NCBI RefSeq assembly: GCF_000150275.1
Contig: NW_002060961.1
Coordinates: 1,010,600-1,074,599 of the forward strand
Source: Trichoplax adhaerens
Lineage: Eukaryota; Animalia; Placozoa
DNA length: 64,000 nt
Reading direction: 5' to 3'
The notes under the pieces: generated by a model
Seen by the model: the letters and a program-made list of their open reading frames with translations, nothing else
Told to the model about the DNA's origin: nothing
Databases searched by the model: none
Translations under genes and position numbers: made by a program
Part shown: one piece after another, positions 18,283-52,631 of the stretch
How positions within the stretch are numbered: the first letter of the stretch is position 1
How the letters are laid out: every line of letters starts with the position of its first letter

Positions 18283-21200
18283 ATGGGAATTAGCCTTGGT
18301 TGTCAAAGTTCCAATCAACCTGTTCAACGTGATACTTTTAATATACCAGTCATTCGGATCGATCGACCTTCGAAAGAGGCACAAGCCGAAACAGAATCGG
18401 TGAAGAGTAGCATCGATGATAGTATCAATGACCTTTCAAATGGGAATAAGCAAAGTCAATATGCTAGAACAAAGTCATCATTGGATGACAACAAGGATGA
18501 AACGGTAATGCAAAACGACGATGAGAATGGCAACATTGTAGCAAATAGTCGCCAATTAACGAATACTACCTCTAACGAAGAGGACATTACTCCAATGGAG
18601 AATTGTTATAACGATAAGCTAAATTTTTCGAATGATATCAATGATGTCGACAAATCGATAATGGATAACGCTGTCAAAGCAGTACAAGATGGTAGTAATG
18701 AATGTAACGTTACTAAGGACAAACATCAGAACGGATCCATGATAAATAAGACTATGAATTTGAAAGAAAATCATTCAAATCTTGATGAGATTAGTAATAG
18801 CTGTAGTAATGTTTTGCATCAAGCAGAGGATCCTGTTGAAAAACCTCTAGATGAAGTACAAAATAAAATTATCAATGATATTGCCTCAAGTAAAGTCGAT
18901 TTTAACCGCCATAATCTTCAGACAGGAAGCACTGCTAGCAATGGTGTCGGAGATACTTTACTTGCGGCTACTGCTAATCAAGAAATTGTAAGTAAAGATG
19001 ACCAAGGAAATCATAATAGTGATAGAAGCGATAGCAATCATGTTCAAGATAACATTATCCATTCTTCATCTTCTGCCGTGGATGAAATGATAATCAATAG
19101 CCAATGTAAAGAGATCGGAAGCGAAAACAGACCTATAGATAAATTACAAAATAATATCAACAATTTAACTAGTGAAGAAGAAAATCGTCATAATATTAAC
19201 CAAACCATGACGTCGTCGCTAGTAGTAGATGCTACGCCTAAAAATAGTAAAGAAATAGACTTTTCTACCCAATCCGATCCTCAAAATTTGCAAGATGTTG
19301 TAGATCGTTGTTGGAAGGAAATCAATCAAAGTCGAAATTCTTCAGATAACCCTCAAAATTCGAATATCAAGAATAGAACAGGATGGCAGTGCATTCGAAT
19401 ATTTGTCTCATCGACGTTTTCAGATTATCATTCGGAACGTGAAGTGCTTGTTAAAAAGGTAAATATATAAGAGTAACTATTCATACATCATTGATTGTCT
19501 TTGATATTTGTACACTCGTAGAGCTTTATAATTTGAAACAATGTTTCAAATTCAGATTAATATATCATTGATTACCTCCAGCAATCTACATTTTTAAAGC
19601 GTTACAATTTGAAGCAATGTTTCAATTTCATTTTAATATATCATTGATTGCCTCCGGTAATTTACATTCTTAGAGTGCTACAATTTGAAGAAACGCTTTC
19701 AATTTCCATGAATTTTAAATTGCTTTATTGTACTAAAGTTTTGCGGTCAGAGTTTTTATATATATCAAGTCCTTGAGACACAATTGAGATGTCGTAGTGT
19801 CTGTAAATGATGGCACCAATTTTTTGATTTGTCTGCGTGCTACAAGGATTAAAATTTCAAATGAACTAAATGACTTGTCTTATAACACACAGGTCTTCCC
19901 AGAACTTCGTGAGTGGTGTGAAGAAAAGTGTCTCTATTTGATTGATTGCGATCTTCGTTGGGGGGTACCGAAAGATTCAACTACGGAGGAAGTTTTACTG
20001 ACCTGCTTAGAGGAAATTGACCGATGTCATGAAGAAACTGATGGGCATCCATTTTTTATTAATATGTTAGGAGACAGGTAAGAGTTTTAGCAACGTATAG
20101 CTTGATAGTTATCAATTTTTTGCTTTTGCTAAAGCATTACGAGATTTTTTCAAACTAATTTCAACAGTCTAGAATAACAAACTAACGCATGAACGATTCT
20201 CTGTTTTGTTTCATAAGGCTTTTTATTTCTTAATTACTGCTAAGTAACAGATAATAAACTAGTGTTTATGCTGACTTATTAAATAAATAGAATATTATAA
20301 CTTCCTCATTATAAACACAGACTCATTATTGGCTCATCATTGCTCTAGTTATATGCTGACATTACTTAATTTTAAAAACTTTTAAATTGGAACTGGCAAC
20401 CTATCATTTGCTTTAAATAATAAATTTGGGTCATTATCCAATTAATTTTATGCTATTTAGGTATGGATGGACGCCGTCATCAGATCAAGTTGCCGATAGT
20501 ATTGCACAAAAGTATAATTGGATCTTTCCTTTATCTATAACTCATATGGAAATTTTACATGGGGCCTATCGAAATTGTAATCCGAATGCGGCTTTCTTTA
20601 TTCGAGATTCAAGTATTCTTAACGACATACCAAAAGAATATCATTATCAATTTAGTGATAATAGCTTATTGTCCAAGCTACAGTTACAGGTTTTGTTTCT
20701 TTTCTACAAAAGAGTTACAAAAATATTAGATACTACGCTATTTTCATCTTATATGTAATAATTACATCTCGATATACAAAATACAGACATTAAAAGAACA
20801 CCTGCAACAAACGATGTCTAGTCAAGTATTTCATTATTCGTGCCAATATGACGGGATAATATCGCCACTTGGTGAACAAGAAAAGGTACTTAAGTTGATC
20901 TCTATAGCTAAGCTTTTTTTCTTCGCTTAGTAAAATATTTTACGCTGGTTATTTCGAAAACTTCCAGATTAGCCTTATTGGGTTAGACGATTTTGCTGAG
21001 AAAGTACTAAAATTTTTCAAGACTGCTATCGAACGGCAATATCCTACTATCAAAACGGAAATATCTCCCTACGAAATAGGTTAGTAAAGTGTTATTTCAA
21101 AATTTATAATTCTATTTAATATCAAGCCCTTTCGTTATTCTTGACTGCAATAACTTGAATGAAGATTACGTGCAGCTATTTGTAGATATCCACTCTCCTA

Positions 21201-24200
21201 TGTTTGATAGCTTTTGCTTTCGTACCATATCCGAACATCATTTCCTATTTTAATGTATTTTCGACAGCACTGTTTGAACATTATGCATCAGTGATTTTTT
21301 CGATTTATGTCAAATCAGCTAAGCCTAATAAATACAGTAGGCCTGCTACGGTACTATGTTTCCTAAATTATGGAATTAAAGAAAGTGTTGTTTCTCACAG
21401 CATTTCAATGTTATATGTTTTGTCGATTATAGTACAGTGTGTCTACTGATTACGAGACTTTTAGAAAAGTAGTTGTTAAGCGTTACAGTAGATATAGTAC
21501 TAAATCTTTCGATAAATTGGACTAGTAATCTGTAGAAGCAACTCAAAGTAAGTACTTTACGTTGACTAGACTAGTAGACTTGTCAGGAAGTAGTCTGTGA
21601 CAAGGCCATATATCAAGCGCTAGCTATTGCATAAAAAGCCATACTACTTTATAAAATTTTGCTTTGTATAATATCCGCATAGGCGTTGATTTTAATTGAA
21701 CACCGACGAAGATTTTCATCATTCATCATAAATTTTACAAATATCATATTTTTATTTTATTATCTTACTGCATATAACTATTCCTCTCGTATTTTGGCAC
21801 CTTGAATTTTATCCATAACCATACTGTAGTAAATTAACGGGCATAGATTCTCGCCATTCCTTAATCAATTTGCAATGATGATTAATATGAGCAAGAGGTT
21901 ATGCAATTTTTTTTCAATTTTTTTCTAATTTATGGATCTCATTTTGTTCATTTTAAAGAATTTGCAAGTCATGAAATATTCATGCAAAGCCGTGGCAGGC
22001 AGGTTCTCGGTAGAAAAAGTGAGATCCAATCTGTTGTTCATTATGTTACTACTGCAAGCAATCAAGCCTCGGAAGATGATAATAATGATCAGTTAAAGAC
22101 TTATTCTGATGATACGGTTTCACCGTTAGTTATTACTGGTGCATCTGGTATGGGTAAATCGGCATTAATGTCAGCTTGTGTATTGACTTTGCAAAAGGTA
22201 AATGAATTCGTAGGCGTTAAGCTTTACAAAATATTTTTATTAACATGATCGCTTTTTCCATTTGGCTACATTAATTTTTTATTACCTTTACTCAATAGAT
22301 GAATTTCGACGTCTTTTATCACTTTATTGGAGCTTCTCCTAGCTCAACGAGTGTTCATGAGATGATTTTGAGAGCTTGCTTTTATATGAAGGATCGTTAT
22401 CGCGGTAAATAAAATATGAATTTCGCATTTCCTATTTCGACTTTCTAATTTTATCATTCATAAAAGACATTAAGCGGTACGGTCCTGGTATTTTGATAGA
22501 TGATTTCAAAGATTGATAAAATTCTGGATCTAAGTCGATTAATATTAATTCAGATAATTAATTGAATATTTGAAATGTTTTACCGCGAAAATTTCTAACA
22601 TAGCCTACCTGGAAATGGCAATGTTTTTATTCGATTATGTTATGAAGTTAATCAAGCGCCGTGTACTAATTGTTCTCACATTTTATACTATATCAAATTT
22701 TTAGAAAAGTTAAAAGCAAGTGATGAAGATATAGACAGTTTGAGCCGTATTTCAACATCAGAACTATTTCACTATTTTCGTCAATGGACGGAAGATATTG
22801 CGACCGCCATCACTTCACCATTTGTGCTTATTTTTGATGCCCTAAATCAGGTAGAATACCAAACCTAGTGAATTTATTTGTATCACTGATATTATTAGCT
22901 TGTTAATAGTATACAGTGATCATTCAATTAATATATAGTTAGGAAACTGTGATCTAAGTTGGTTACCCAAGAATTTACATGGAAAAGTAAGAATTTTATT
23001 TAGCGCTATCGATGGAAGTGCTGAACTGAGCAAACTGATGGAGCATCCACTGCAACTGCAGCAACTTCAGCTAACGCAATTGGATACTAATGCAAGGAAA
23101 GAAATTGTCGTCCACATATTAGCTCAATATCGAAAAGTAATTCAAGATCGATTACCTATTTGATGGACTGATTTATATAGTTATAAAATCAGCAGATATA
23201 AATCTTTATTGATATTCCTAATATTTTCTCACAATTTCGATAGTCTCTAGATCAGATTCAGCTTGATTTGTTGACATCATACCCTGCCGCATGCAATCCA
23301 TTATGGCTTGCATTAGCATGCGAAGAGCTGCGAGTTTTTGGAATATTTGAACAAGTTACCGATAAGATTAAAAGATTTTCAGGTGCTTGAGATTAAGTTT
23401 AACTTTTGATAAGTATATTCTTAATCAGTCATTCTTATACTGTATTCTATTGCTGTAACTGGTTTGTTATCCAGTATTAATATTAATTTGTGTATGTGCT
23501 AAATATCGTTTGAGAGTATAAAATTTTTCACGATCAGAAATCAGCTAATCTCGAAATATTAATGGATATTTCTACCACAATTGCATTAAGGAGTTAGTTT
23601 TTGTTTGCTGCGTACTTGAATATTTACTAATTGACTAATGGGCTTTTATGTGTGTTGAATAATGTTTTACAGAAACCTTAGAAGGTTTACTAAAAGATAT
23701 TTTGGAACGTATTATTAGTGAAGATAACTATGGCATAGCCAAAAAGGTGAATGGCAATCAAATGTAACAATGCTTCGTTAGTCGATCCATTATTTTAACT
23801 AATTATATTGAAATCATCAAACATGAGAGTAATGATATTTATTAGAAGCCAAGATTGTTTGCTTATGTATAAGATATCATGCATATTAGAGATTTATTAT
23901 ATTGTTTCATAATTAATAGGTCATTTTACTAGTTACCCTAAAAGTGTCTAGCGTAATAGCCTATTTCGCTTCTTGGTTAGAAATTACGTACTTTTGTTAA
24001 AAGCTCTAAACCTAGGTTGTTTGCTTTCGTACTAGATATTATGTCTAATAGAGACTTCTAGGCATGGACTATATGAAATCGAATTAAAGCAAGTATTAAG
24101 TCAATTAGAAACCTTACCTATGCTTGCTTGGGCGCAAGCTTATCGAGCGTTAAAGCCTTTCTTAAGGAATTACCAAAGCAATCAAGGAGTCGCCGTCCTA

Positions 24201-25566
24201 GATTTTTTTCATCGCTCAATTAGCAAGGTATCGGATATTTAAATATAGCATAATTGAGGTAATATCGTCTTAAACTATTATGAATGAAACTAGGAATGTT
24301 TTACTACGTGATAATTCTTACAGAATAAGCAAATTGCAACCATCTCATTACTTATTAAATATTATTTCATCAATCCTAGTTGTAGCACATAATTCAGTGC
24401 AATTATGAAAAGCTCTTATTGCACATTAAATAAGAAATATCCAACTTCTAACTAATACGTTATCACATTTTATTATTCGTGAATAGTTATGCAGATGAAT
24501 GTATACATATACATTAAATTAATCATTATTGCATTGCCAATTCTCCTTTCTTTCAATTTTAGACTGTTCGAAATGACTTCCTACAAAACGATAGAGCAAC
24601 TGTTAATAGCTATCGGAAAATGTTAATTGAGTACTTTGAAAATAGTTGTTCCGATCTTGAACGTATATGTCTAGAATTGCCTTATCAATTATTTGAAATT
24701 GGCGAGAAAAAAAAATTAATTGAGTTTATACGCGGTAAAAGGTCTGTTCATATGCCACAGCATCAAAAGCAATCGTATTTAAGGGTGAGACTTACTCGAT
24801 AGCTTAAAATATTTGATGATAATTACGTATAGTTTCATATTTAAAATGGTGTAACTGAGAATAATTAGTTAATTGATAAAAATTAATTAAAGACTTTGGT
24901 AGTTAAGAGAATTACTTATCTACTGATCCAGCAATTAAATGCACCAGCTTAGCTTGGCTAAGTAGTAATACAATACATAATTTAGTAGCAAAAGGCAAAG
25001 ATAAATGCTATAGTTTCGCGCTTAATTACCCGAGATGCAAATGCTAGATACATCTCTTATATCGAAATAGAGATTGCCATATTAATGTTAAGATATACTA
25101 TGATCATGATTAATTTTAATGCCATTTTCCATAATATTAAATATAGAATTGTATAATACAATGTAGAAAATGTAAATTATTATCGTCAATAGTTTGAGGA
25201 TGGCACTTTCTACTGGATAATGTCTTTTCACTTTTATTTTCTTAGCGACTCCGATGTCAAAATTTTTGCTTCAAGAAAGAAAAGCAAGCAGTAATTTGTC
25301 ATATGTGCCAGTATAAAACCAATGGCCTTGGTCAAGGTCCATTTTTAAATCGTGATGCTTGTATAATCTGCGGTGGATTTGTATCATCTCAAAAATCACC
25401 AGTTTACTATTGCATGAGACATAATCCCCATCCGTTACCTCATTGGAATAAATGTGCTATTTGCTCAAAGCAAGTTCAAACAAATACGCCTGGTATGAAA
25501 CCAGTCGATGCTAAAGTTTGTATGATGTGCTATGGAAATGGTTCAATGTGTGCAACCATAGGCTAA
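18283..25566 (+). CDS. DUF4062 + NACHT-type STAND NTPase (TEP1/NWD-like core) with a long disordered N-terminus and a C-terminal Cys-rich, PHF5-like domain
   Basis: About 14 GT-AG exons (18283-19458, 19893-20077, 20461-20689, 20787-20885, 20968-21079, 21959-22197 ... 24563-24784, 25246-25566). DUF4062 motif IRIFVSSTFSDYHSEREVLVKKVFPEL...DLRWGV...CLEEIDRC...PFFINMLGDRYGW. Walker A GASGMGKS, Walker B FVLIFDALNQL, and NPLWLALACEELRVFG. Confidence 0.9.
19525..19710. repeat. Tandem repeat ~75 bp x2.5 in intron 1 of the NACHT gene
   Basis: tta(t/c)aatttgaa(a/g)caatgtttcaa...aatatatcattgatt(a/g)cctcc repeated. Confidence 0.75.
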
Positions 25567-26914
25567 CAAAGTTAGAGATTGTCCGCCAGACAATGGCTTA
25601 ACACTGCTATAGTTTAAATTTAGCTGTGCATGTATATAGATATACTTATATATATATATATGGTATGCCTAGAGCAGGTACTATCGTAAATTCATAAGTA
25701 CGCTATTTAAAATATGTTAACGATAAATAATAATTATACTATCTTATAAAAAGCTAGAAATTTCATAGCTTACTGTCATAGAATTGATAATAGCAAACAT
25801 ACACAACTAAAATTTTTCTTGTTAATCAGCTGCGTATAAAATTTTTATGGATATGAAATAATCAATTCTTAGTAGGCATAAGTTTGTAAATAGCTCACCT
25901 GCTCGAAGTACTTCGTGATTACTGTTAATAATCAACTTTCTCGCTTTTCTTATTGAATTATTTTATCGAAAAGAGACAGATATGTCCGAAACAATGGAGT
26001 GTCAGGGTTAAGTATATTAGCTTAGGCATGATACTGTAGTGAACGTAAACGTTTACTGCTAGGTATCATGATCGATTATTGCCAAGAATTTCTAAATAAG
26101 TTATTTAAATAAAACATTATTCGCGTTGTTTGAAGAATCTGTATTAACGGGTTATGTTTGTATAGCTAAGGAAAAGTTAGAGCTTTTTTCATGCTACAGA
26201 AAATATCGTCTCAATTTGCGAAATGAAATAAAAACGACTTTACCAAGGTTATTTATCGAAGCAGTTTTACATGCCAAATTTAAATGTTTGATGTTTCTAT
26301 GCGTAACTGTGGTCAATCACTATTGCTAGAATAATACAACGGCACCTATGCACATTGTGTGCAGTAATATGGATAAACTACAATGTAGCAATTGTATTCG
26401 AAGCTAATTCGTATAGTTAGCCGAAATGCAGACAGCGCAACATATGCCAAAAATTTAGGACATTTTTTCTTATTCAACTCGTATACTCGTATACGAAGAC
26501 GTATAATTTAACAAAAATAAGAATGTGAGCAGCTAGTAGAAATTTTTGCAAATTTATTAATCATCGTTTAATTTTTGATACACTAGTAACTAAAATGCAA
26601 ATTTTAGGAACCAGTAAAATCTGAAAATAATATTTATATTCAACATAGCTAATATAAGGAAAGTAAGCGAAAATATTCGATTTCTCGAGAAATGATAAAC
26701 CGATTCGAATCAGGAGTAACATGATCATAAGACCGGAACATATTACCCCAGTTTTTATAATACTTACACATACATACAAGTAAATTTCACAATTAACGTA
26801 TGCAACTTTTACATTTAAATCGAAACAAGATAATGAAAAAATTGTAGCAGATATAGAATGAAAGGTTAAACTTCTCCGATACAATTTTTAAATCTATATA
26901 ACAGAAATACTTTG

Positions 26915-29900
26915 TCATGACTGATTAGACGTAGCATCCACAACCGAAATAGTATAGCAAAGAGGATCTGCTACACTGGATGGCAAAACACGGATTTGGC
27001 AAGCTCTGCTACAATTACACACTTCTCCGGGCTTAAAAGATCTTACTATGGTATTATTAGCTAACTCCGGAATATTACTTGAAGCTTGACGTTGTAAATG
27101 CTGCTTTTGTCTTTCTACATAATTTAAACCACTATAACTGATAGAACTTTTCAACTTTGAAGAAGCTTCCGGTTCAATGCTTTCTCTTGATGAAACTGAA
27201 TCGACTAAGACTGTTCTGTGATCAGATAATGGATAAAATTCGAATTCTTCACTAGAACTCAGATTGATCTCATTCAAAGAGTTGTGTGCTGTAAGTTTAT
27301 TTCTAGGATTACTGCTTTCGGCTATACGTGCATCATTATTCTCTGAACCGCTAGCTTCTATCATTTCTTGAATTGACAAAAAGGATGAGTTTGGAGTTAA
27401 GCTGGAAGATAATTTTGGATCCGGCTGTACTGCATTGACGGTTTCAGTTGTAGTTAGGCCTTGATTGCTAACAGATTTTTCTAACGATTCTGAATGAGTG
27501 CTTTTCTGACGTAAATACTGTATATAGTTTGGATTATATTTGCACAATTTAACAAATGGCATCGGAAGATTACCACTAACTAAGGGAACAACCATTACAG
27601 ATACAGAAACAGTGGCACCAGGAACTTGTGGTATCGTGACTATTCCACAATTTCGCCCGCACACTATCCAAGATGAAGTATTTACTTGGATTGAATATAA
27701 CAGGTGATAATGATCTATTGGGGATTCAGAATTTATCGTACTATTATCATTAGCATGTTTCTTTCTCGTATCTTTGATTTCAATCTGTAAATTGCACGGC
27801 AAACCAACAACAATGGAATCACAATTTGTATCCGGATGGATAAAACTGTTAATGGTATATAACATCTACCACCAAAATAAATCGGATATTAGAACAATAG
27901 ACATTCATACAATAATAATACAAGATTCTTTCTATTACCTGCACGTTGGCTAAACTTAACCTATATATAAATTGAAATGGTTCGACGTTCCTATTAGCTT
28001 CACTCTGTATGAAAATTGCATAATAATTAGTAGAGCCCTATGTAATATCAATTCTAACGTGAAGTAGGATGGTCACCTTTTCATCTACCATACTATAGTC
28101 AACAAGTAGCGTACATATCTGCTGCAGTTTCTCATTCGATAGCTCTAATGACTCTGTGTCTTTTAAGAGAAACAATAGAGTTTGCCAACATTAAATTTAT
28201 TGTGCGTTAACGACTTAAAATTAAACAGAACAGGAATATATTCTTAGATACTATATTACCATTATTGTTATACGTAACTTGCCAAAGCAGCGAAAGGGTT
28301 TGATTTGGATGCAATTTCTATACATCATAAACAATATAAAGGTTAAAAACCCTACAAGACAAAGAATCGAATTTGCTCTGACTTTCCAGTTACTCACAAT
28401 ATTGCCTGATTTCTTAACCGGAATTAAGTTGATTAATGTTGCATTATCGCCTCCGCTCGCTATTGAATTTGCTTTTAAACTAGCTTCTTCTATATTTATA
28501 ATTGTCGGCAATACTGCTTGTAATATGATATGAACAAAATTTCTAAATAGATGGGAAGGCAAAGAGACCGTTAAAGCATAGACTGTAATGACGGTAAACC
28601 TGAAATAGAATGGGGAATATCTATACAAACCTGATGCCTGTCAGTTGCAGCTTTTGTTTCAAAATGAACGGTTCATAAAATATTAAGGTAATGATACAAC
28701 TATACGTTGGTGGTAACCAAAGGCAACGAAGGAACAACTACAAATATTTGGAACAGTATAAAAAAATTTAACTTGGTTCATTTTAGATTATGCAAGTCAA
28801 GACCTACTACCTGGTGTGAGTACTTTACCAGCGGATCATTATCAGCTGGTTTTCGATCAGTTTGAGTTCGACAAGATACTATAGACAAAGCTTGATGAGC
28901 TAAAAACTCCAAATCGAAGCTAATTTCTGCATAACTTTCGCAAGCAGGCAACGTTACTAATATTTCAAAGCTATCTTGCATTTCTTTGCTATTGATATCT
29001 AAATCTACGACCACGCTCTCATCTGTAATTGTAAATACAGGAATAATTTCGTATGCATAACTATTAGCCTTCAAACATTTTAGAAATGATGTATTCATAA
29101 TTTACAAATGGTCGCATCAATTGTTACTGAACACTACACTAATTACCAATTGGTTGATCGTGAAGACGTTTCTTAGCACTATATGAAGGCTTCGGAATGA
29201 ATTTTAAACCTGTGCTAGAACATAATTTCAGTTGTGAACCAGACGAAATTGCAGTAGAACCATTAATTAATTTCACGTTAGCGTTTTGCTTTGCACCGGC
29301 AATGAATAGTTCTACGAAAAATAAAATATAAATATTTCTAAATATTCATATACTAGTAATTCACTTTTCATTCAGGTATTTATACATAAGCATGATTTTA
29401 ACCTGATAATTGGCCGTGGCTGGATATATCGATCCTCGGAGGTATAAAGATAACGTTAAAACTGAATTTATCATCTTCAACTCGTGGATGGACTAAGGTC
29501 ATCTTTTTATTTATATTGAGACTAAAGGAACGAACTTGATATTCCCCATCTTTACCGATCTAAAGAGCAATGAACGCATTTGGAATTATATCTCGGTATC
29601 GGCTTACTTATGGGAATACTGTCTCGTGATAGGTTCAGAAATGAGCCGTGCATAGAAGCAATGAAAGACGTATACAAAAAACATTCAACACAATATATAC
29701 CTCTCCAGTTACAATAACTGAGTTGAGTCCTGGTCTTAAAATTGCCTGGTCGCATACCAGATGCTTAAAGTCACTATCATACGGCTTAATAATGCTGTTA
29801 CTGTTGTGCTCCGTATCTAGCATTTGAATTATTTGTCTAGTTTTCTTTGCATCTTGGTCGCTTGCGGTGGTATCCAAACTAGACGATTCCGAGTTGTTAA

Positions 29901-39270: not shown

Positions 39271-42200
39271 ATGAGACACCAAACCAGACCCAATCCTAAC
39301 GATTATTTGAAACCATTGGTAGACATTGGATTTAATCACTTCAATAAAGGTGAATTTGATCAAGCTCGAATTTGTTTTGAAAAAGCACTACAAAAAATTC
39401 AAGAAATTGGACATACCAGTATATCGCATGATCGATTGAAATTTGATCTTTACTTACAAATTTCACAAACTTATTATAAGCAATTAAAGTACAACGATGC
39501 CATCGAATTCTGCCAAAAAGCAGAAAATATGGCAAGAACTTTTAAACACCGCCTACATATCGCTCAAGCTCTAGAAAGTCGAGGCAAGATTAAAGTAAAA
39601 CAACAACTATTTCATGCAGCTCTTGATGATTATAATGAAGCTCTACAGTTAAAAATAGCCGTGCACGGCAGTAAACATATTGATGTTGCCGACAGTTACC
39701 ATGCTATCGCAGAGATCCATGTCCTACAGCATCAGTATAATCATGCGCTAACACTACAAGAAAATGGTCTCAAAATAAGGCTCAACAAAATGGGAAGAGA
39801 TCATTTTCTAGTAGCTCAATCCTATTACAGTATTGGGTATACTTACTATCATTTACAACAATATGATAAAGCACTGAAAAATTATAAAAATTGCCTGAAT
39901 ATTCGGTTAAAAAAATCAGATAATGATTACTTAGGCCTTGCCGAAACTTATAATGGCTTAGGTGAAACTTATTTTAAATTGCATGATGATGAAAGTGCTA
40001 TCTCTATGTATCAAAAAAGTCTAAATCTCAAGGTATCTGTCTTTGGAGATTACCAAATTGAAAATAGTAATTTATACTATCGTCTTAGTGTAGTATACCT
40101 ACGCCAAAAGCAGTTTGAAGAAGCTTTTTTCGCTATCCAAAAATGTTTAAAAATTAAATTAGAATACGACGGAAATAATCATATTGATGTTGCAAAATGC
40201 TACAACACCATAGCTTGTATTTATACTGGCCAAGGACTATATCATGATTCGGCCATGATGTTTCGAAAAAGTTTACAAATTAAACTAAATATAGCAGGAT
40301 ATGACCAATTTGATATTGCCGATAGCTATCATAATTGTGGTAATGCCTACTTGAAAATTGAAGAATATCAGCAAGCATTATTAATGTACCAAAAAAGTCT
40401 CTTTATTCTCTTACAAATCGCTAAAAATGACTCCCATCGCAAACATATCGCGGATTTATATCGCGTTATTGCCAAAGTTTATTCGTACCAATGCAAAGAT
40501 GCAGAAGCTATCGTTATGCTCGAAAAATATTGTAATATTATTTTAAGTCAACATGGAGAATGCCAAAAAGTGGCTGCTATCTACAAGGAAATAGCAAGTA
40601 AATACGAAAAACTGCACCAGCAAAATGAAGCTTCCCGTATGCATCAAGAAGCTTTGCGTATTATAAAGAATTTTTCGGATGAAAATGATAGCCCAAAATC
40701 GATAGCATTAGCACAACATGGTAATAAATATTCGACAGGGATTATCGTATACTAGAGTACTTGAAAAATGTATACTTTTAATTAAATTGTAATTGTTTAT
40801 TCCATTCGATATGACTCGATTTTATTACATCTTTAGTTGCAATATTTCGAAAAACTCATTGCATAATATCATTTTTACTGATGCTGAAATAGCTTTCTTA
40901 CCTCTCATTAAGCATTTTTGTAAGTTTTCTAATTTTACCTGTATTTCTACATCTTAATTATTTATTTAGCCATCGGGGATCCGAACTATTACAAAGCTTT
41001 CATGAAAGTCCTGAAAGATGAAAAATGTCGCAGTGATTGTACACCAATCGTATTTGTTGGCCCTGAAAATTCTGGTAAAACATCAATTATGAAATTATTC
41101 TCACGACAAGAACTGATTCCAAATCTAATGCCAACACAAATTATCGATAATCCTGGTATCATGATCGATTTAAATAGTTACAAAATTTTTGACAGTGATA
41201 CTTGTGACATTGGTAGGATACTGGATAGAAAAGTTGTTGCAGCTATAGAATCAACTAAATGGGGTATGATTTATCAAGAAGATATGAAAGATTCTAATCA
41301 TTCAAAATCATCCATAGCTAAAACTGCTGATGATTCTCGATTAAATAATGAAAAAATTCAGGCCTCTTTAATCACACCCAATCAATTGCATGAAGAAAGC
41401 ATTGGTAACTTAAAACCTTACGGTGATCATGACTACTTATCCAATGCTTATACTAAACCGGTAAATTTGAAACATTATTTGGATATCTTTAATAATTATT
41501 ACGAACACAGCTTAGTTATAGAAAGTGATGTCAAAACTCACGGCTACAATTGTGGTAAATTATGGGATTTTGGCGGAAACCCCATGCACTGGATTGCTCA
41601 TCAACCTTTCATGTCAGGGAATAGTATTTATATTCTCACTTATAACATTGCTCAAGATATTAATCAAATAGTGCAAACAACAGACATTGATCCTAATAAA
41701 ATGACTTATTTACAAACTATTGAAGAATGTATAACCAATATTGTTGGCAGGCATAGCAATCAGAATAGAATTGAGCCTTGCGATGATGATAATAGTGATT
41801 ATGATAATGATGGTATAAGTAATGAATATTCCTTACCTGTAATTATTTTGGTTGCATCTCATGGCGACTGCGTTCAAAATATCGAAGAACAACGCAGGTT
41901 ATTTGAAGGATTCGAGCAAGCTCTACTTGCCTCTTTACCACAATATGAGAAGCATATTTGCTCTTCAAGTATTATATTTAATTGTGATCCGCATGATACT
42001 AGCCCAGCTACAATCAGTCAACGCAAACAAAGCTGCCATCATTTGCAACAAATTATACAACGTTTCTATAATTCCTTACCTTTACTTAAAAATTTTATTC
42101 CTATTCGTTGGCAAATTATGTCCAATTTAATATTAAAATCGTCGAATAGATCATATCATCAAGTCAATTCTATATTAGTCGATAAAATTAATAAAATCAT

Positions 42201-43717
42201 GTTTGTTAACGAAATAAAACAATTATCAATAGATTGTGGTTTGTATCAAGGCGATCAAGATTTACATGATATGTTGAAATCTTTGCACAATCTCGGAGAT
42301 ATATTATATTTTCAAGACAATCAAGGTGAAGGAATCATTATAACTCAAATTGAATGGCTATCCGATATATTCCGAAGATTATTCACTATGGGTAAAAATG
42401 CAAGAAAAGTAATTGGAAGAAGATTCCTAATTAATTATGCAGCTCGATTTAAAGGTAAAATACCGCAATCATATCTAGATAACATATTAAAGAAGATCTC
42501 TATTACAGATAAACATAAACAAATTATATATCATTTAATGGAAAAATTCGATATGATTTATCCTATGGAAAAAGATGAAAATGATAATTCGGATGATTTG
42601 TATTACTTTGCACCGTTTACAGTAGAACCCCGTATAAGTTTAGGCCATATTAACTTAGCAAGATATCATGTATCAGATTGGCTATATATTGGTTATGATC
42701 AAAATGAGTTATCATTTATTCCTACTAGCGTATTCATTAGCCTTCTCGTGGCTTGTTTCAAGCAGTGGAAGAATTCAAAAGTTGAATTATACTATAATTG
42801 CGTTAAATATTACGTTAAAGCCAATCAATATTCGTATTATTTGATTGTTAAAAAAGCGAAGCGCCATATAGGCTTACGATATTACTGCGAAAAGGAGAGC
42901 AATGCCACGAAAGATAATATTACGAAAGTGATTGATGAAACTCGCCCTCAAGATTTTGTTTATAGTCAATTAATTGCAATTTTGAAGGAAAAGTTACCCA
43001 CTATTAATTGCAATAACTGCCAATTTAGCATACAGTGCCATTGCAATGAAATGGTTACTCTAAATGGATTAGATCAACGTGATTATGAAGCAATTGAGTG
43101 TCATTATTGTCATCAAATTGTTAGGACTCACTATTTGAAAGACTGGACGATTTATACAAGAAACTCAGAAGGTAATGTCTATTGTAATTTTGTGTTAACA
43201 ATGATTAGTAGAGCGGTAAATGTGAGATGATTAGCATTAGTTCAGATACCGGTATACAATCAAATTCTATTGGTACCATTTACATATGAATTTAATCGAT
43301 AAAGCATCTATTTTTCTTTTTTTAGTCTAACCTAGAGACTAGAAAACTTTGCATACTTATGCATCAATAGCTAGTCTCAATCACTGCTCGACACCAAACT
43401 CTATTATCGGCATACTAACTGATTTCTACATTAATTCTTTTATTGTAGTGCCTCAATGTTATTTTTTCAAGATTTCTAAGCACATTGGGATAGATTGGAC
43501 TAAATTAGCAGCAAAGCTGGATGCTAACATTGATGTAGATACAATCAAAGTTGAAAATCAAACAGTTTTTGATCGTGCATTAAAGTTATTAAATGAGTGG
43601 TTTAATAGAAATTGTAGCAGTAATGCAACTCAAAATTTGATTACTGCTTTGAGAGATATTGATCGATATGATATTCTACTAAAGTTAGGAATCTCTGGCA
43701 ATAAACTTGACATGTAG
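39271..43717 (+). CDS. Roco protein 1: TPR array - Roc GTPase - COR - Cys cluster - Death domain (~1306 aa)
   Basis: Exons 39271-40720, 40970-43171 and 43449-43717 join three separate ORFs through phase-1 GT-AG introns. 42-aa TPRs (IADSYHNCGNAY...), P-loop GPENSGKTS, G3 LWDFGG, G4-like LVASHGD, COR signatures IPIRW and LKSLHNLGDILYF, Death domain IGIDWTKLAAKL...LLNEWF...LITALRDIDRYDI. Confidence 0.88.
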
Positions 43718-44166
43718 ACCCTTATGAGCATTTTGACCCAATATTTACTTGATTACTGTATTAATGTAGGTAATATTGGATGTGATTGATCGATTTATGA
43801 TGGATTTTACATGAAGTTAATCCGATTTACCCTTCTAAATATGCTTATATTTTGGATATTAGCCAAAAGTTAAATATCATAGGCTCTAAAATTGTAAGAG
43901 AGCTATTCTAACATGGTATAGTTGAGTACTACAGAAACTAATAATGCTAAACTTCACCGAATATTAAATATTTTTGTCTTTAATCCTATGAGTTATGAAA
44001 AGAATCAATTTCATCTTCTATCGTATTGTATAAAACAATTTTGGCTGTGTATTACCTAAATGATGTTCTTTGTTTTCTGTTAAAATATTTTTGACCGTAA
44101 ATATTGTAATTATCACTTACCTATGATATTACTCCGATTAATTCAAGCGAAAAGTGAGCCAGTTTG

Positions 44167-44795
44167 TAATAAAGATATCATAATTCATCGGACATTATTT
44201 TTGATCTTTATTCATCAAAATAGAAGAATTTGTTGAACAAAATGCGAAATATTTACTGCGCCTGAATATAATACCACAAATAGAGGCTGCTGACAAAAAG
44301 AATATTTTATACAATAAATATAAAGCGTGATCGAAAATACTATTTTAATATCCTACAAGCTTGTTTCATATTTGGAAGCAAAGTGCAAGGAACTGAGCAA
44401 TTTGATAATAAAGCTATTTGTGGAGTACCCCGATGTTCTTCGTGATTCAAACTTTTAACTCTTCTAGTTCATTAACTAATGCTAATAAAGATATCGTAGT
44501 TCTTTGGACCTTGCTTTTAATCTTTACTCATCAAAATAAAAGAATTTCATAAAGGGAATGCGAAATACTTGCGCCTTAGCCTAATATTACCGATAGTTGT
44601 TCCTGATAGAAAAACTGTATTTACATAATTAATATAAAGTGCCATCGAAAATACTATTAAAGATCCAATAAGCTCGTCTTATATTTGGGCTGAGCTAGTA
44701 GCGAACTGAACAATTTGATGATATAGCCATCTATGAAGCGCGCTGCCGTTTTTGTGATTCAAATTTTAGTTTCTCCAGGTTAATTAACCATCGTT
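44167..44795. repeat. Diverged direct tandem duplication, 316 bp x2
   Basis: taataaagatatc starts at 44167 and 44483; colinear blocks tcatcaaaata, atgcgaaata, atcgaaaatactatt, caatttgat and gtgattcaaa. Confidence 0.8.
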
Positions 44796-47700
44796 ATGTT
44801 GGTAATTAGATTTAATTACGTAATTTCATTTGTTTCTATATATTGATCATGAACAAAAACAACGCAATATAATGCTCAACTAAACACTATTACTATTCAC
44901 AGTGTCTACAGCCTCTTTGAGGGCCCACAACAGGTTCTGTTCTTGCCAGATAGAGGAATTTCAGTACATTGCAAATTTATAGCAACGAGCTAACAATTGG
45001 AATACTGCACTATAAAGTTCACAATTTTAATATCGAACTTTGAACATCAGACAAGGATTATAGAAACATTAGAAGTTCAACAATCTCTCTACCTAAAGTA
45101 ATGCATGGAATTTATAAGAAAAGCATAGGAATTAATGAATGGTCCCGATTATCCTCATCCATTGAAATTATAATTAGTACCGTAGGCGATGGAGCAATAT
45201 GAATGACAATGGCATTGAGTAGAAAGTAATGTCTGGCAGGTTTATTAGCTCTAACGGGTGACGGAGAAAGAGATTCTAAATAATATCGTTACCTACGGTA
45301 CTTCTAACTCATAACAAGGTACTCTACTCGAAGAAAAATCCCTTATTTTCTCTATTTTCTTAGCAAATTCTATACCAGTCAGGTTTCTAAGTTCGAAAGA
45401 CTCAACTTGGACCGAATCATCTCACAAGCTAGTAGACTAATTTCAAAGACTCTGTTGCATTATATAATTATGGCAAGTTTTACTGTACTAGCGCTTCTAA
45501 TACTATTGAAAATACCCTTGCTCTGTTTTTAGTTACTGAATTCTTTGCCTGTGGGAAAGATCTTTTAAGGTTGCATAGTAAATAGCGATGGTGATAGTAA
45601 GTTCTTATTAATCATACTCGTATATTGTTATTGTACTCTATATTGGTCAATATGATTCTTTTGTTGACAAAAGAATCTCTACCATCAGATAAAAAATCAA
45701 TCATCATCACTCATTATAATTACTTAACCCAAGTCTGTTAATATAAAAAGAAAAAAGTGGCAGGAGTATTCTTAACTGCATTAAAAGCGATAATATCACT
45801 TTCCTGCTATGAGTATCGTTAGATGTACAAGTATTTAGTTCCTTTACAAGCTCTAATCGTATGATATCAAGGATTGAAAGTACAGCGATTATTGAATAAG
45901 TTATTATTGAACTTTTCATCGAACAGTAGCGTTGGTGGGAACGATCAGCATTCAAAGTCTAAATTTGACGACAATGCTGTTAACTTTGTTATGTACTAGT
46001 AATACTATCAGCATAGTGAGCAAATATAGAGATACTGCATAGTCTAGTAAAAAGACGGCAATTACTTGCTGGTTTTAGAATACCTTGAATAGACCATGTT
46101 ATATGACGTAATAGTTTGTAGAACTTTACACTAGTATGCTATGTTTTATTTATGCGAAAGCAACCGAAAATGATGTAGATTATGCGTGCAAACCACGTTG
46201 AGCGTCTACTTTGTCTAGCGCGATTGACCTATAATAATTATAATTAATGGATAATATGAAGAAAGACAACCATTGTGTAAGAGAGCGAAAGAGTATTTCA
46301 TAATTATGTGATTTAGTATGACAATTTTAATTATTGGTGGTGTTCGTAGGATAAAAAAGGAAATGTTCACTGTTATGTCTGTTAGTTGATATATGAGTCT
46401 ATTTCAATGTTGCTACGACCCACTGTCGATTGATTGATTGGTAGTTTTACATCATTGTTGATAAACAAAGCACGATATTAAATGGCTGTCACGGCATGAA
46501 TCACCCGGAAGAGTCAATGACTAAATTTAGTGATTAACATTTCTATATGAAGATAGCTAATAATGACTTACAATAAGAGCTAGGGTAGGAGAAAATTAAT
46601 GATATGCCACTAGACAGTATTTTGCGGTATTTAATGATATGCCATCGTAATTTATCGAAATTTAATAATATGGATCAATTTAAAATTAGCTACCGTATAA
46701 CAACTCTTACAACAGTACAGTATAATTTACTATATAACAAAATGAATTGATTATAGTGTTATGTCTTGTAACGCTTGTGATGAATATCCTGAAGATATTC
46801 AATTTTAGAGGATACTATAAATAATTCTGTGTATAGACATACCGTAATCTAATTATCTAGAATCGTTCAGTATATCTCTAAGATTATGAATAATTTCTGT
46901 ATTAATTTAGCTATTCCAATAAGAACTAAATTGCATGATCTGTTATGACTCATACATGATAGCTGGCGCCGGAGGGTAATTAAGCTCGGCAGATAATTGA
47001 ATAAAAGAAAAGTGCTATAGTTCTTTACCGCAGAAGCAAAGGCGTCTAAATTCTTGTGAGGTAGTTAAGGATAATAAATCCCGGAAGCTATAGTAATTTA
47101 GAGGTTTGTTTTACGTTGTCTTTACCGCGGTTTTTTTGTTTTATTGTTTCTTTAGTATAAAATAATAAATTATCTGGATTATAATTAATTGATTACAATC
47201 ACATGCCTACACCTAATAGTATTAACAAAGCCGACTAGTGTAAAAAAATTACAAGAGCATCCTGAACAGTGCAAGTAGCAAAAAAACATTTTCTTTCTTG
47301 AGGATCAGTAGACATATGCAGTTCTGTAGCAAAATCTTCTGGCTTGGGATAGTATTAATAAAAGATATGCAAAAAAGTCAAATTAACATACTTATATTCT
47401 AACTTTTATCAATCTTAATCCACGTCTTTAAAACGCAAAATCGATATCACCGTTAATTAATGTTATAAATCAAATTTTCTTCTTTCAGTTAATCTTTTAA
47501 TTTTTCGCATTTCTAAATCTTAACCTATACCATTAACGAACAATTGACATCATTATTCATTAACGAACCAATTTTCTTTGTAAGCTTAATCTTTCATGTC
47601 TACAGACATGTAAAAATAGATGGTATGGTGATTTTATCACATTAATGTATTTCAAAACTGTAACAATAAAATGATTATATTACAAGGTATTCGCTAGTTA

Positions 47701-48072
47701 TTTACATATTTAATTACACCCCTTAGCTATTAATCGAAACTAGAACTATTGTTCCATTTTTAAATTCACCGAGAATATGATAGTAATAATTTGAGGCATT
47801 CGTAATTTAGAAAAGAATTCGTAACAATGACATATGCCTATTAAACTGCCGGATTAGCTACTATACGTATCATTGAATAACTTGATATAGCAATAAAAAG
47901 GAAATATACGATCTGTTTTTATTCTTGCTGCATTCTAGTCAGAAGTAAGTGTTTGCCGTTCCGTTCGTCCACAGCTATCTATCGCATTAAAACTGCACCC
48001 TTTCACAGTTTAAAACGCTGCTCACTAATACCCACAAGCCTACAGCTAAAACTGATTTCCTTTCGACAACCA

Positions 48073-51000
48073 ATGGAAATAAAACTTCAACGTAAAGAAG
48101 CTAATAAGCTTTTTAAACAAGGATCCTATGAAGAAGCTCGATCTCTTTATAGGCAAGTGTTGGATCGAATTGGAGGGTCTAATGTATTGCCTCGATTCGA
48201 GATCACACTCCAGATTGTTAAAACCTCTATTTATCTCCAAGATTACGAGATTGCAAAAAGTGACTGTGAGAGTGCTAAACTACTAGCAAGAAGATTAAGT
48301 GACAAGAAACTTCTCCAATGCGAGAAATATTTAGGTGAGATTTGCCATCAACAAGGTAATCATGAAGACGCATTACAATATTACAATTTAGCTTACCGAC
48401 TATCAGTACAAATTAACGGAAGCAAACATCTTACAACTGCTGATATATCGCACCAGATTGGAGATGTATACGTAGCAATGCAACATTACAGCGATGCTTT
48501 AACGTCCTATAAGCAAGCACTGAAGGTAAGACAAAAAAGACTTGCGAAATTCAGCAAATTGATCGCTAACTCATACTTTGCTATTGGAAATGTTTACTCT
48601 TGTGAAAGAGAGTATAAACTAGCCATCACAAACTTTCAAGAGAGTTTAGCTATTCGACACAAACTGTTTGAAAATAATCATTTGCTTATTGCTGACTGCT
48701 ACGAAAGATTAGCGCAGATATGTAACGATCAATGTAAATTTCATGAAGCTGCATCATTGTTTGAAAAATGTCTTAAAATTTACCTAGTAGTTGGTGGTAA
48801 AACAAATTTCGATGTTGCACAACTTTACCGTAACATTGGATTGGCCAAATTTGATAATGGTGATCATGGAGAGGCCCTTTCTAGTCATCAGAAATGCTTA
48901 GAAATCTGCATCAACATATATGGAGAAGAGCATCCTAACGTAGCTATGTCGTATAGCAGTTTGGCTTCTATATACTATCAGCAAGAGGAATACCAGCAAG
49001 CTTATGATATGTTTCGAAAGTCTCTGGATATTAATTTGAAAGTATTAGGTAGTAATCACTGGATAATTGCTGATACTTATCATAATATCGGTAATATTCA
49101 TTATAATCAAGAAAAATGCAGCGATGCTTTAAAGATGTACCAGGTAGCTATGTTCATGCGACTGAAACAAACAAGAAATGATCATATTCGACATCGTATT
49201 GCTGATTCGTATTTCGTAGTTGCTAATGTATATGCAAAGCAGTCAAAGTACCATGATGCTCTGGAAATGTTTCTAAAGTCTGTCAGTATTTTCCAAAATT
49301 TATATGGAGAAAGTAATATTGTAGCCATAATTTATCAAAAAATTGCGGAGTTATACGATAGGGATGGCAGAGCTGACGACGCAAATGATATGCGATCGAG
49401 AGCTTCGGAAATATTCGATAGATTAGAGCATGGACAAATTCCAACACCGATACAAACTACATCACCAGGTACAGTATTACAAGTCAAACTGTATAATAGA
49501 GCAGAAATTTCCAACTGAAATATTTTTATCAAAGTAATTAGCCAAAGTTGCGACTTGATGGTAGCTAATTTCTTACCAACAACTACTAGTTTTACGCGTA
49601 TACAAAATGCCTTTCATAAGATACCATAAGGTAGAGACGCTGAAATCTATTCCTAACGGAAGCATAACTTAGTTTATATCTTTCATTTTATAAGACATTG
49701 TATTGTATGCTTTACTTTACATATAAGATATATTAAATATTCATTTTCAGCCCTAAAATCATTCATTTTACAAGCTAATTCTAAATTTTGTTGTTGGACG
49801 TTTCAAAGTGTTACTTGCATTTATTTATTACGCGCTTAATTTAACTAGACGTTATTGTTGTTGTAGTTATCGTCGAAAATGATTACTTCAAGGCTTACAT
49901 GATTGCTACAATATATGAAGAATGCCATAGCGATTGCACACGCCTCACATTTATTGGTCCTAGCGATTCTGGTAAAAATTTTATCGTCAAGTTGTTAACG
50001 AAGCAAAATCTTACATCGCCATATGTCGCTGAAAATACTGAAGCAATGCTGGATCTTTCCACTGGTAATATCTTTAAACAGAAGACAGATGACTATCGTA
50101 AAATAGTCGGTAAAAAGATTGCTGCAACAATGCTGTCGATAACGCAACAGATGGAGAGTCAGTATAAAATGGAAGAGAGTTCTTTATCTGAGCTAATACT
50201 TTCGAAAATTGAAACAGTCCCGGAGGCGAACCCTACTATCATTTCTTCTTTCACTTCTGAATATGATGAAAACAGACTTGAAGAAAGAATTTCAAATACC
50301 GATACGAATCTAAACGCTAGTCCAAGCACTCAATATGCTAGTGTAGATACTAGACGATATTTAGATACATTCAATGATTTCATGCAGCAGTCTCTTCAAC
50401 TATGTGATGCAGACAATTCTCAAAGATCTTATTACAGCAATGTTTGGGAATTCGGAAGTAAGATATCGTGGAATCTACGCCAACTTTTTACGCTTCGTAA
50501 CAGCATCTATATTTTGACATTGGACATTACTGAAGCTACAAACCAAACATCTGCAACGAACGAGGAGCGTACAACATTGAATACCTTTCTAGATAGTATC
50601 AAAGAATGTTTAGTCTCTGTTCTTGACGGTCACTGCGATGATGCCATTTCAGATCCAATTCAAGTTGACGATGCTGACTTGGATGTCGGTATATATGAAG
50701 AATTTGCATTACCTGTCGTTATCTTTGTTGGATTTCATAATGATTGCGTAACCTCAGATACTGTAAGAATTTTCAATAATTTAACAGAAACAATTTTTTC
50801 AACCTTTCCACAGTACAGTCGACATATTATACCGTCCGATGTTGTGTTTAATTGCAATCCGAAAGATACTAGCTCTTATGCAATTGAACAGCGTGAGACA
50901 TCTTGTCAGGCATTACGCAAATTAATTCAGCATTTTACTAAATTAATGCCTGTATTGCAAGACTGTGTTCCAATACGATGGCATATCTTGCTATCTATAC

Positions 51001-52631
51001 TGCATAAATCCGTAATTAACGATGGATGCGCGTGCAGTTCAAACAGCAGTAACTTCCCGCGTAGAGTGATGTCCGTGCACGAGGTAGAGGAACTTCTTCA
51101 AGATTGTGGATTATTTCGAAGCGATCAAGATACGTGCAAGATGTTACAACATTTGCATGATCTAGGAGAAATATTGTATGTTAAGCCGGATTATGGCAAA
51201 GAATACATTATTACTCAAGTCGAATGGTTAGCGAAGATTTTCCAAGTTCTCTTTGCATCCGCTTTCGGCCAAAAAGCAGACGCTACGAGAAGATTCTCTT
51301 TCACCAGGATTACTAAAATTAAGACAGACGGTATAATGAAAGAAAGTCATATAACGAACGTATTAAGAGAGTTTAGTTTAGACGACAAAGAGAAAGAAGC
51401 AATATTACAGCTATTAGAAAATTACAATATCATATGTCCAAGAAATAATGCGAATGCCAATAACGAAAGTGTTGCAGCGGCTGGACGTGAGTACTTCGTA
51501 CCGATTATCATTACTCCAAATTTCAAATCGAAAATTGATATTGGCAGTCTAAATGATGCTGGATATCATGTATCAGAAAGCTTATATATCCAATTCGAGG
51601 ATAATTCGTATATTCCTGATGTGATATTCTATCCTTTCCTTATTTCTTGCTTGAGAAAGTGGAATAATCTGGAAGCAGAATTATTTTATAGAGGTGCTAA
51701 ACTATTTTTGGAGAATGATTTATACTACCTGCTTATTGTCAAGGAGAGATCCAAAATTAGTTTGCGGTATTTCTATAAGAAAAGTACTAATCTGTCTGAC
51801 GAACTGATTAAGAAATTAGTTTGGAAAAGTCGTCCACAAGAGCTTATTCAAGGCAGATTTTTCGATACTGCCAAGAAGTATATGCCAAAGTCCATGAATA
51901 GTAGTTTAGCAAATTATGTTAAATGTAGCGAATGTGGCCAATTCTTAAATTTGTTCAGTTTCACAGAAGATAGTCGTTGTAAAAAGTGTATTTATTGCGG
52001 TAAAACTGCAAAATCCATGGGTGATTGGATAAACCTGGGTAAGTTTGGGATAGACGAAGTGTAGTAAAATTACCATATACTTTATACTATGATAGTAATT
52101 TGCTCATAATTGTTGTCGGTACCATTTCTAGTTTAGGTTCAACTGAACAGGCTATACCTTTTAGCAACTACTATGATAGATTTATGCTTATTTGTGTCAT
52201 ATATTTATTCGTAGAAGCCTATAGAATAGAATTAAATAAAGTTATTGCTTTTACATCAAGTAAGATAATAATTTACGCTGTAATTATTGTTACTTACAGG
52301 GTCTACAGCTGATACAAGGCGCCATTTTTTCACCGTAGCTAAAGAAATTGGTATCGATTGGGAGAAGCTAGCGGGTGCACTAGGCATACATTGTAACGAG
52401 ACCTCAGTTATCGACGCCGAGAACAAAAATTATTATAATAAAGCAAATCAACTCTTGGAGAAATGGTATACGCAAAATTACTGCCTCAAAGCTACTTACA
52501 CTCTAGCATGTGCTCTAGATCATATTGAAAGACGCGATATTCTTGCAAAGCTCAAGTTCAATTCGTTGGAACTGTCTGATCTTAAAACTGCCGGAAGAAC
52601 CGATATTCTTGAGCGGCTAAATTGGCATTAG
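48073..52631 (+). CDS. Roco protein 2: TPR array - degenerate Roc - COR - Cys cluster - Death domain (~1299 aa)
   Basis: Exons 48073-49468, 49867-52038 and 52300-52631, with the same phase-1 intron layout as paralogue 1. P-loop GPSDSGKNF, G3 VWEFGS, G4-like VGFHND, COR VPIRW and LQHLHDLGEILY, Death EIGIDWEKLAGAL...LLEKWY. Start ATG 48073 assumed; the ORF track starts at a TTG. Confidence 0.86.

Follow-up and report, generated by a model that had tools for sequence, protein, structure and literature searches.

The stretch of the Trichoplax adhaerens genome considered here (contig NW_002060961.1, positions 1,010,600 to 1,074,599; hereafter the window, 64 kb in length) is AT rich and intron bearing. 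It carries the gene TRIADDRAFT_61017, which codes for a STAND NTPase with a DUF4062 (NIR) domain, a NACHT module, and, at the extreme C terminus, a cysteine-rich domain of 106 residues (hereafter the tail) that probably represents a distant relative of the spliceosomal zinc protein PHF5A. An initial annotation, made from the letters of the window, had singled out this tail and likened it to the triple zinc knot of PHF5/Rds3.

Gene structure and domain architecture

The coding region of TRIADDRAFT_61017 extends from 18283 to 25566 (+) and comprises 14 exons, which are all open in phase and sum to 1145 codons plus a stop. This model combines transcript contigs, a check of phase, and the public protein XP_002116951.1 (UniProt B3S9T1), which has 1145 residues and matches the translated first and last exons with 100% identity; we used it as the full-length reference. 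Contigs assembled from four runs of four studies (one run recorded as RNA, the other three presumed to be so) contain twelve GT..AG joints between 19800 and 25799; the joint of exons 1 and 2 was deduced from contig sequence extending into the last part of exon 1. The joint 24784|25246, which removes the last intron (24785..25245; 461 bases, phase 0), was recovered in all four runs, with its donor GT at 24785 to 24786 (GTGAGA) and its acceptor AG at 25244 to 25245 behind a polypyrimidine tract. Since single contigs of 4260 and 4415 nucleotides link exon 2 to the tail exon and the 3' untranslated region, the tail exon belongs to the NACHT transcript and not to a separate one. The transcripts thus bear out the phase-0 last exon and the junction that the initial annotation had read from the letters, and translation of 25246..25566 (+) returns exactly the 106 residues and stop that it had quoted, encoded by a single open exon. 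A variant at 25299 in one run falls inside the codon of Cys18 of the tail and is synonymous. Low-depth contigs from three runs also cover the last intron unspliced (24755 to 25292); these are probably pre-mRNA or DNA carry-over, the spliced form being far deeper in all runs. The 3' untranslated region starts at 25567 and continues at least to 25799, the end of the stretch examined, which the transcript contigs reach; the first AATAAA/ATTAAA signals after the gene lie at 26108 and 26227.

Exon 1 (18283..19458) opens with the codons for MGISLGC (codons 1 to 7; 18283 to 18303) and encodes an Asn/Ser/Asp-rich low-complexity segment of ~370 residues (aa 1 to 371; 18283 to 19395). This is an unusually long region ahead of DUF4062, the corresponding segment measuring ~40 to 280 residues in other animals and ~460 residues in a choanoflagellate. 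The TIR-like DUF4062/NIR domain begins in the same exon and spans residues 372 to ~560 (exons 1 to 4; 19396..20876), where the Pfam model matches residues 372 to 467 with 39.1 bits (cutoff, 24.7). According to three 2026 preprints, DUF4062 (now called NIR) acts as a TIR-like NADase effector in bacterial defense systems and in human TEP1, and its eukaryotic copies are mostly N-terminal in NLR-like proteins. In the Trichoplax domain, a SITHME motif supplies a putative catalytic glutamate, E484 (20549 to 20551), which is invariant in an alignment of 45 orthologous sequences, as is a DLRWG.P motif. E484 lies ~111 residues past the start of the domain; judged by such a comparison of positions, which is not a direct alignment, with E1008 of TEP1 (domain start at 896) and E97 to E108 of the bacterial proteins, it may be equivalent to the catalytic glutamate of the NIR NADases.

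The NPHP3_N (32.1 bits; cutoff, 24.8) and NACHT (28.6 bits; cutoff, 26.7) models match residues 650 to 826. Walker A (GASGMGKS, residues 661 to 668; 22138..22161) and Walker B (LIFD, in the context ...LIFDALNQ) are both intact, with conserved columns at G664, G666, K667, and D760, the last of which, the Walker B aspartate (22836..22838), is nearly invariant in the 45-sequence alignment. A winged-helix and helical part follows (residues 827 to 1039, exons 9 to 13; 23125..24784), in which NWD1-type winged-helix (HTH_NWD1) and NPHP3-type helical (NPHP3_hel) models give weak matches over residues 870 to 973. The remainder, residues 1040 to 1145, is the tail, encoded by the terminal exon (25246..25566). 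Pfam detected no TPR or WD40 repeat family on XP_002116951.1 or on three of its relatives (P0004, P0008, and P0010). NWD1, NWD2, TEP1, NPHP3, and TTC41 share with the Trichoplax protein the N-terminal DUF4062/NIR domain, the NACHT module, and the winged-helix/helical part, but proteins of the NWD/TEP1/NPHP3 type end in WD40 or TPR repeats, whereas the Trichoplax protein, as the initial annotation had recognized, ends in a predicted zinc module of 106 residues in their place. The automatic public names for members of this family, "telomerase protein component 1-like" and "TPR repeat-containing," are misleading.

The N terminus shows a further recurrent feature. In 31 of 60 full-length members, the protein begins with MG and has a small or hydroxyl residue (S, T, G, or C) at position 6, and Cys or Lys is often close by (e.g., the Trichoplax start given above, MGSGCSC in the choanoflagellate protein, and MGCCQSK). 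This pattern suggests N-myristoylation, with or without palmitoylation, and hence a membrane-tethered STAND protein. NPHP3 is likewise known to begin with MG.

Conservation and spread of the terminal domain

In the numbering of the tail, the twelve candidate zinc ligands are C4, C18/C21, C39/C42, C56/H59, C70/C73, C92/C95, and C102, i.e., a lone cysteine, four CxxC pairs and one CxxH pair, and a final lone cysteine (codons starting at 25255, 25297, 25306, 25360, 25369, 25411, 25420 [the histidine], 25453, 25462, 25519, 25528, and 25549 on the + strand). The ligand count of the initial annotation was correct, and the pattern, being nearly invariant, does not reflect chance: the eight residues of the first four pairs (C18, C21, C39, C42, C56, H59, C70, and C73) are found in 78 of 78 tails; C92, C95, and C102 are kept in 77, the exception being a leech model whose end is aberrant; and C4 occurs in 72 tails and is gapped in the remainder. 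The same twelve positions are invariant in a curated 51-row alignment and in the 45-sequence alignment, while an extra cysteine at tail residue 8 is not conserved. Median pairwise identity among orthologs is 53% for the NIR domain, by far the best-conserved part of the family, 28% for NACHT, 36% for the helical part, and 27% for the tail. Tail identity drops to 17% once the ligands are left out, so the zinc scaffold appears to be fixed and the surface free to vary. The tails are also strongly basic, with a median net charge of +10 and a median isoelectric point (pI) of 9.1.

The tail domain is single copy in the Trichoplax genome (105.6 Mb, 1414 contigs). An exhaustive HMMER search with its 106 residues against 1.84 billion cluster representatives recovered 13 matches. 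Four of these, from a jellyfish, two acorn worms, and amphioxus, are DUF4062-NACHT proteins of full length, all with the same C-terminal domain; the others are fragmentary, and at least three of those correspond to exon-sized open reading frames that reach a splice acceptor. We took a census of the family by a full-length search with the acorn-worm protein, followed by a search of its best 120 relatives with a hidden Markov model of the tail. The model matched the extreme C terminus of at least 53 full-length proteins among these 120, which answers the question, raised by the initial annotation, of whether the combination of DUF4062, NACHT, and this domain occurs elsewhere in animals and protists. 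The tail-bearing proteins come from Placozoa, Cnidaria, Echinodermata, Hemichordata, Cephalochordata, Mollusca, Brachiopoda, Annelida, Nemertea, Rotifera, and two urodele amphibians (Pleurodeles and Lissotriton, whose proteins retain all twelve ligands), with one further member from the choanoflagellate Codosiga hollandica. Retention looks patchy: there was no teleost, amniote, arthropod, or nematode member among the best 120 matches, in which no systematic survey of taxa was made, and no mammalian member among the matches examined.

In a tree of the DUF4062-NACHT region with the tail left out, all tail-bearing proteins fall in one clade (Shimodaira-Hasegawa-like approximate likelihood ratio support, 98), which also takes in some truncated models along with three rows on long branches, two of them protist. 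The TPR-bearing paralogs form a fully supported clade beside it, in whose proteins the Pfam families PF13424 and PF24885 occur. In the window and in two unrelated contigs alike, a phase-0 intron stands three codons ahead of the first cysteine, so we regard the tail module as a terminal exon of ancient standing. As far as can be read from the sequences, the fusion is thus ancient and common, as one clade, to many animal phyla and a choanoflagellate. The initial annotation had proposed a fusion by exon shuffling; the conserved phase-0 intron fits this without demonstrating it, and the fusion is not specific to Trichoplax.

Pfam (2025 copy) holds no model for residues 1040 to 1145, and a scan of the tail by itself drew only C1_1, at an E value of 0.45; when the tail and seven homologs were scanned together, there were scattered matches to zinc ribbons (including the double zinc ribbon), C1, FYVE, and RING, all at noise level. 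Against PDB sequences, phmmer returned only chance antibody matches and a profile search gave nothing below an E value of 0.6. A feature search of the ESM Atlas with the tail found no relatives, and a word-based homolog search with the tail region of P0008 recovered only P0008 itself. The literature that we searched likewise contained neither a description of the tail nor a link between PHF5 and STAND proteins, and the three 2026 preprints on NIR do not mention a zinc or cysteine-rich C terminus. What is new here is thus a STAND NTPase family with a PHF5-like zinc knot, as predicted, at the sensor position; the proteins themselves were already in public databases.

Predicted fold and relation to PHF5A

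Given the 51-row family alignment, AlphaFold2 models the tail with a mean predicted local distance difference test score (pLDDT) of 88.2 and a predicted template modeling score (pTM) of 0.79. In a single-sequence control, the pLDDT was just 38.4; the predicted fold therefore depends on the family alignment, the cysteine pattern by itself being insufficient. When the model was compared with the PDB by Foldseek, a check that the initial annotation had called for, the only global matches were chains of Rds3/PHF5A, with template modeling (TM) scores of 0.41 to 0.56 over ~105 columns. Recomparison with VIA-align placed 8 of 166 chains at a Z score of 2 or more, all of them PHF5A/Rds3 (Z, 6.2 to 7.3; root mean square deviation [rmsd], 2.7 to 3.2 Å over 77 to 79 residues), with model residues 1 to 106 set against chain residues 8 to 90, i.e., over the whole knot core. 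A comparison independent of Foldseek, against 48,161 PDB representatives, again gave only two chains at a Z score of 2 or more, namely PHF5A (5ZYA_D; 6.7) and Rds3 (5GM6_J; 6.4). The folds that the initial annotation had named as those that would speak against it, LIM, RING, FYVE, or another zinc fold, were not matched: the FYVE, LIM, PHD, RING, and ZZ rows had TM scores of 0.13 to 0.2 and an rmsd of >9 Å in Foldseek and Z scores of <2 in VIA-align. In the 2017 description of the PHF5A structure, the same fold was found only in Rds3 (PMC5458519). Since that statement and the search of 48,161 representatives agree, the fold appears to be confined among solved structures to these two proteins. 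The ESM Atlas model of one homolog (P0012) is poor (pTM, 0.25), and its structure neighbors are uninformative.

The correspondence extends to detail. PHF5A/Rds3 (a subunit of SF3b; PF03660; PDB codes 5SYB, 5ZYA, 5GM6, and 2K0A) is a triangular three-zinc fold with a left-handed trefoil knot and has the same layout of twelve ligands, a cysteine, five pairs, and a cysteine. In the tail model, pair 1 lies at a helical turn, pairs 2 and 4 form knuckles that follow strands, and pair 5 sits on a helix; this secondary structure parallels the published description of the PHF5A crystal (PMC5458519); short N- and C-terminal strands of the model could form a "stem" as in PHF5A. By analogy with PHF5A, the twelve ligands would bind three zinc ions, one by pairs 1 and 4, one by pairs 2 and 5, and one by pair 3 together with the first and last lone cysteines. 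The third site of PHF5A is built in this manner and resembles a classical beta-beta-alpha finger (PMC5458519), and the histidine of the tail's third pair fits a site of this type. The tail also departs from PHF5A in several respects: its third pair is CxxH; the spacer between pairs 1 and 2 has 17 residues versus 3, and that between pairs 4 and 5 has 18 versus 10; it lacks the basic C-terminal extension of PHF5A; its surface varies, in contrast to the near invariance of PHF5A; and it is the end of a STAND protein (1145 residues in Trichoplax, 850 to 1250 in the family), whereas PHF5A is a free protein of ~110 residues.

At the level of sequence, the tail falls outside the PHF5 family: PF03660 (cutoff, 26.7 bits) matched neither it nor seven homologs even at an E value of 10, and a genome-wide search with PF03660 turned up a single locus, that of the genuine PHF5A gene, on a different contig (C1399, ~233.4 to 235.3 kb). 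The three exons of this gene (L002 at 1495 to 1674 [−], L003, and L004) are separated by introns that fall within the knot, and the central exon matches human PHF5A at 98% identity. Since the genome holds a near-invariant three-exon PHF5A of its own, the tail did not arise as a recent copy of that gene. Homologs of PHF5A are 88 to 98% identical to the Trichoplax exon, and the tail shares ~20 to 27% identity with PHF5A, mostly at ligands. Profile comparison by hhalign weakly supports a likeness to PHF5. Tail alignments set against a PHF5 alignment gave probabilities of 13 to 16%, and 54 nonredundant tails against the PHF5 profile gave a score of 27.2 with a probability of 40%. In every run, pairs 2, 3, 4, and 5 of the tail were aligned with the pairs of the same number in PHF5A. 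Controls scored lower: a reversed PHF5 profile, in which the CxxC spacing is kept, reached 14.0, and 120 column shuffles had a mean of 10.9 and a maximum of 20.2, none of the 120 attaining 27.2. Nonligand motifs are shared in register at pair 2 (CV/IIC..[FY]V) and pair 5 (A[YK].C..C). The local resemblance to which the initial annotation had appealed, CIICGG...YYC in the tail and CVICGG...YYC in PHF5A, is out of register and has to be given up. Its comparison with PHF5/Rds3 accordingly stands for the predicted fold, with sole PDB matches and pairs in register, and fails as membership of PF03660.

Several of these results weigh against a relationship with PHF5. The tail goes unrecognized by PF03660, and the hhalign probabilities are only 13 to 40%. 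The Foldseek E values are weak (0.2 to 2.5), and Z scores of 6 to 7 are middling by the standards of the aligner. PHF5A/Rds3 were part of the training set of AlphaFold2, and a profile of faint similarity may pull its model toward their fold. Furthermore, with 17% identity outside the ligands, the tail has no evident conserved binding surface. The leading alternative is convergence, whereby an unrelated cysteine-rich segment reached a PHF5-like arrangement of three zinc ions without shared ancestry. The failure of PF03660, the profile probabilities of at most 40%, the near confinement of identity to ligands, and the much longer spacers between pairs 1 and 2 and pairs 4 and 5 are all in its favor, but the forward profile scores twice as high as the reversed one, which retains the CxxC spacing, the motifs at pairs 2 and 5 extend beyond the ligands, and a knotted three-zinc fold would be an unlikely target of convergence. 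We therefore regard convergence as a serious but somewhat unlikely explanation. A second alternative is that the tail binds three zinc ions in some other topology, such as consecutive zinc ribbons or treble clefs, and that the PHF5-like model is an AlphaFold artifact of the C, five CxxC, C pattern. Besides the weak E values and middling Z scores, the noise-level Pfam matches to the double zinc ribbon and C1 and the poor single-sequence predictions (the AlphaFold2 control and the ESM Atlas model of P0012) point that way. Such an artifact seems improbable, however, given a model that is confident only with the alignment, the lack of any other PDB fold at a Z score of 2 among the 48,161 chains, a structural alignment that covers the whole domain at ~3 Å, and sequence profiles that are in register above the controls.

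On balance, the explanation that we favor, and consider probable, is that the tail exon encodes a C-terminal PHF5-like three-zinc domain of a conserved, single-copy STAND NTPase, placed at its regulatory or sensor end and distantly related to PHF5; that the tail adopts the PHF5A/Rds3 fold holds as a prediction. The most likely course of events would be that a very distant relative of PHF5 was joined to a NACHT gene as a terminal exon before the split of animals and choanoflagellates, where it took the place of the TPR or WD40 repeats found in the sister families.

Possible role of the tail in a STAND NTPase

The order of domains, with a putative N-terminal acylation motif followed by the putative NIR/DUF4062 NADase domain, NACHT, the winged-helix/helical part, and the tail, suggests how such a protein might operate. 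The tail, as a rigid basic knot, would form the regulatory or sensor end, which either holds the NACHT module off or binds a partner (protein or RNA). Binding or release of the partner would permit oligomerization of NACHT and thereby bring the N-terminal NADase domains together for activation by proximity. We read the knot as the sensor end because in the TPR-bearing sister clade, as in bacterial NIR proteins, a repeat sensor occupies the C terminus, an analogy that makes this role plausible. The bacterial NIR/DUF4062 defense proteins (Avs2-NIR, Swarozyc, Vulcan, and Vesta; 2026 preprints) follow the same effector-STAND-sensor logic with NIR as the NADase effector. To bind phage proteins, they use TPR, HEAT, or other helical domains as sensors, and none has been reported with a zinc knot.

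A different view of the tail would make it a localization module, in which the basic zinc domain and the presumed N-terminal lipid anchor bind acidic lipids or nucleic acid and the tail is not a ligand sensor. The charge of the tails and the myristoylation-like MG start in half of the full-length orthologs agree with this, but there is no FYVE- or C1-like fold match, and the conserved basic positions amount to R3, position 24, and position 36, with no basic patch beyond these; we consider such a role improbable. In plant NLRs with integrated domains, a nonrepeat domain has likewise been added to a STAND NTPase, and integrated decoys are established there. The initial annotation had named an integrated decoy as one option for the tail. 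As a mimic of spliceosomal PHF5A, the tail would then bait pathogen factors aimed at SF3b and thereby set off the NLR-like protein. The plant precedent and a predicted fold that is that of a central spliceosome subunit speak for such a role, but it is very improbable for a domain that is only ~20 to 27% identical, mostly at ligands, to a protein 90 to 98% identical among animals, that has a poorly conserved nonligand surface, and that belongs to an ancient, single-copy architecture inherited vertically across phyla, far diverged from its putative donor and unlike the lineage-specific fusions of decoys.

If the tail does serve as the regulatory end, as we favor, the sensor of this family would be a zinc domain of 106 residues, far more tractable for structure and ligand work than a large repeat array. 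The family also defines a conserved animal NLR-like group for research on innate immunity and cell death, at a time when the NIR effector has only in 2026 been shown to be a NADase (in bacteria and TEP1). A second widespread family with the PHF5A fold, attached in this case to a STAND NTPase, would mark the knot as a module that can be reused and would offer students of fold evolution a divergent set for comparison with PHF5A. A bolder reading, which we hold tentatively and rate as rather unlikely, is that the tail is a true, anciently diverged paralog of PHF5, the first trefoil zinc knot outside the spliceosome, and the sensor of a lipid-anchored NADase-STAND switch that predates animals. Were this bolder reading true, the family would provide a simple single-copy model of a nonrepeat sensor controlling a TIR-like NADase, in a switch kept from choanoflagellates to salamanders with no mammal among the matches examined.

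Two observations concern the surroundings of the gene. Just downstream of it, a Ser-rich open frame of 316 residues on the opposite strand (26915 to 27865, −) is probably an exon of a convergent neighboring gene. Farther on, the window contains TPR-rich open frames from 39271 onward (39271 to 52631).

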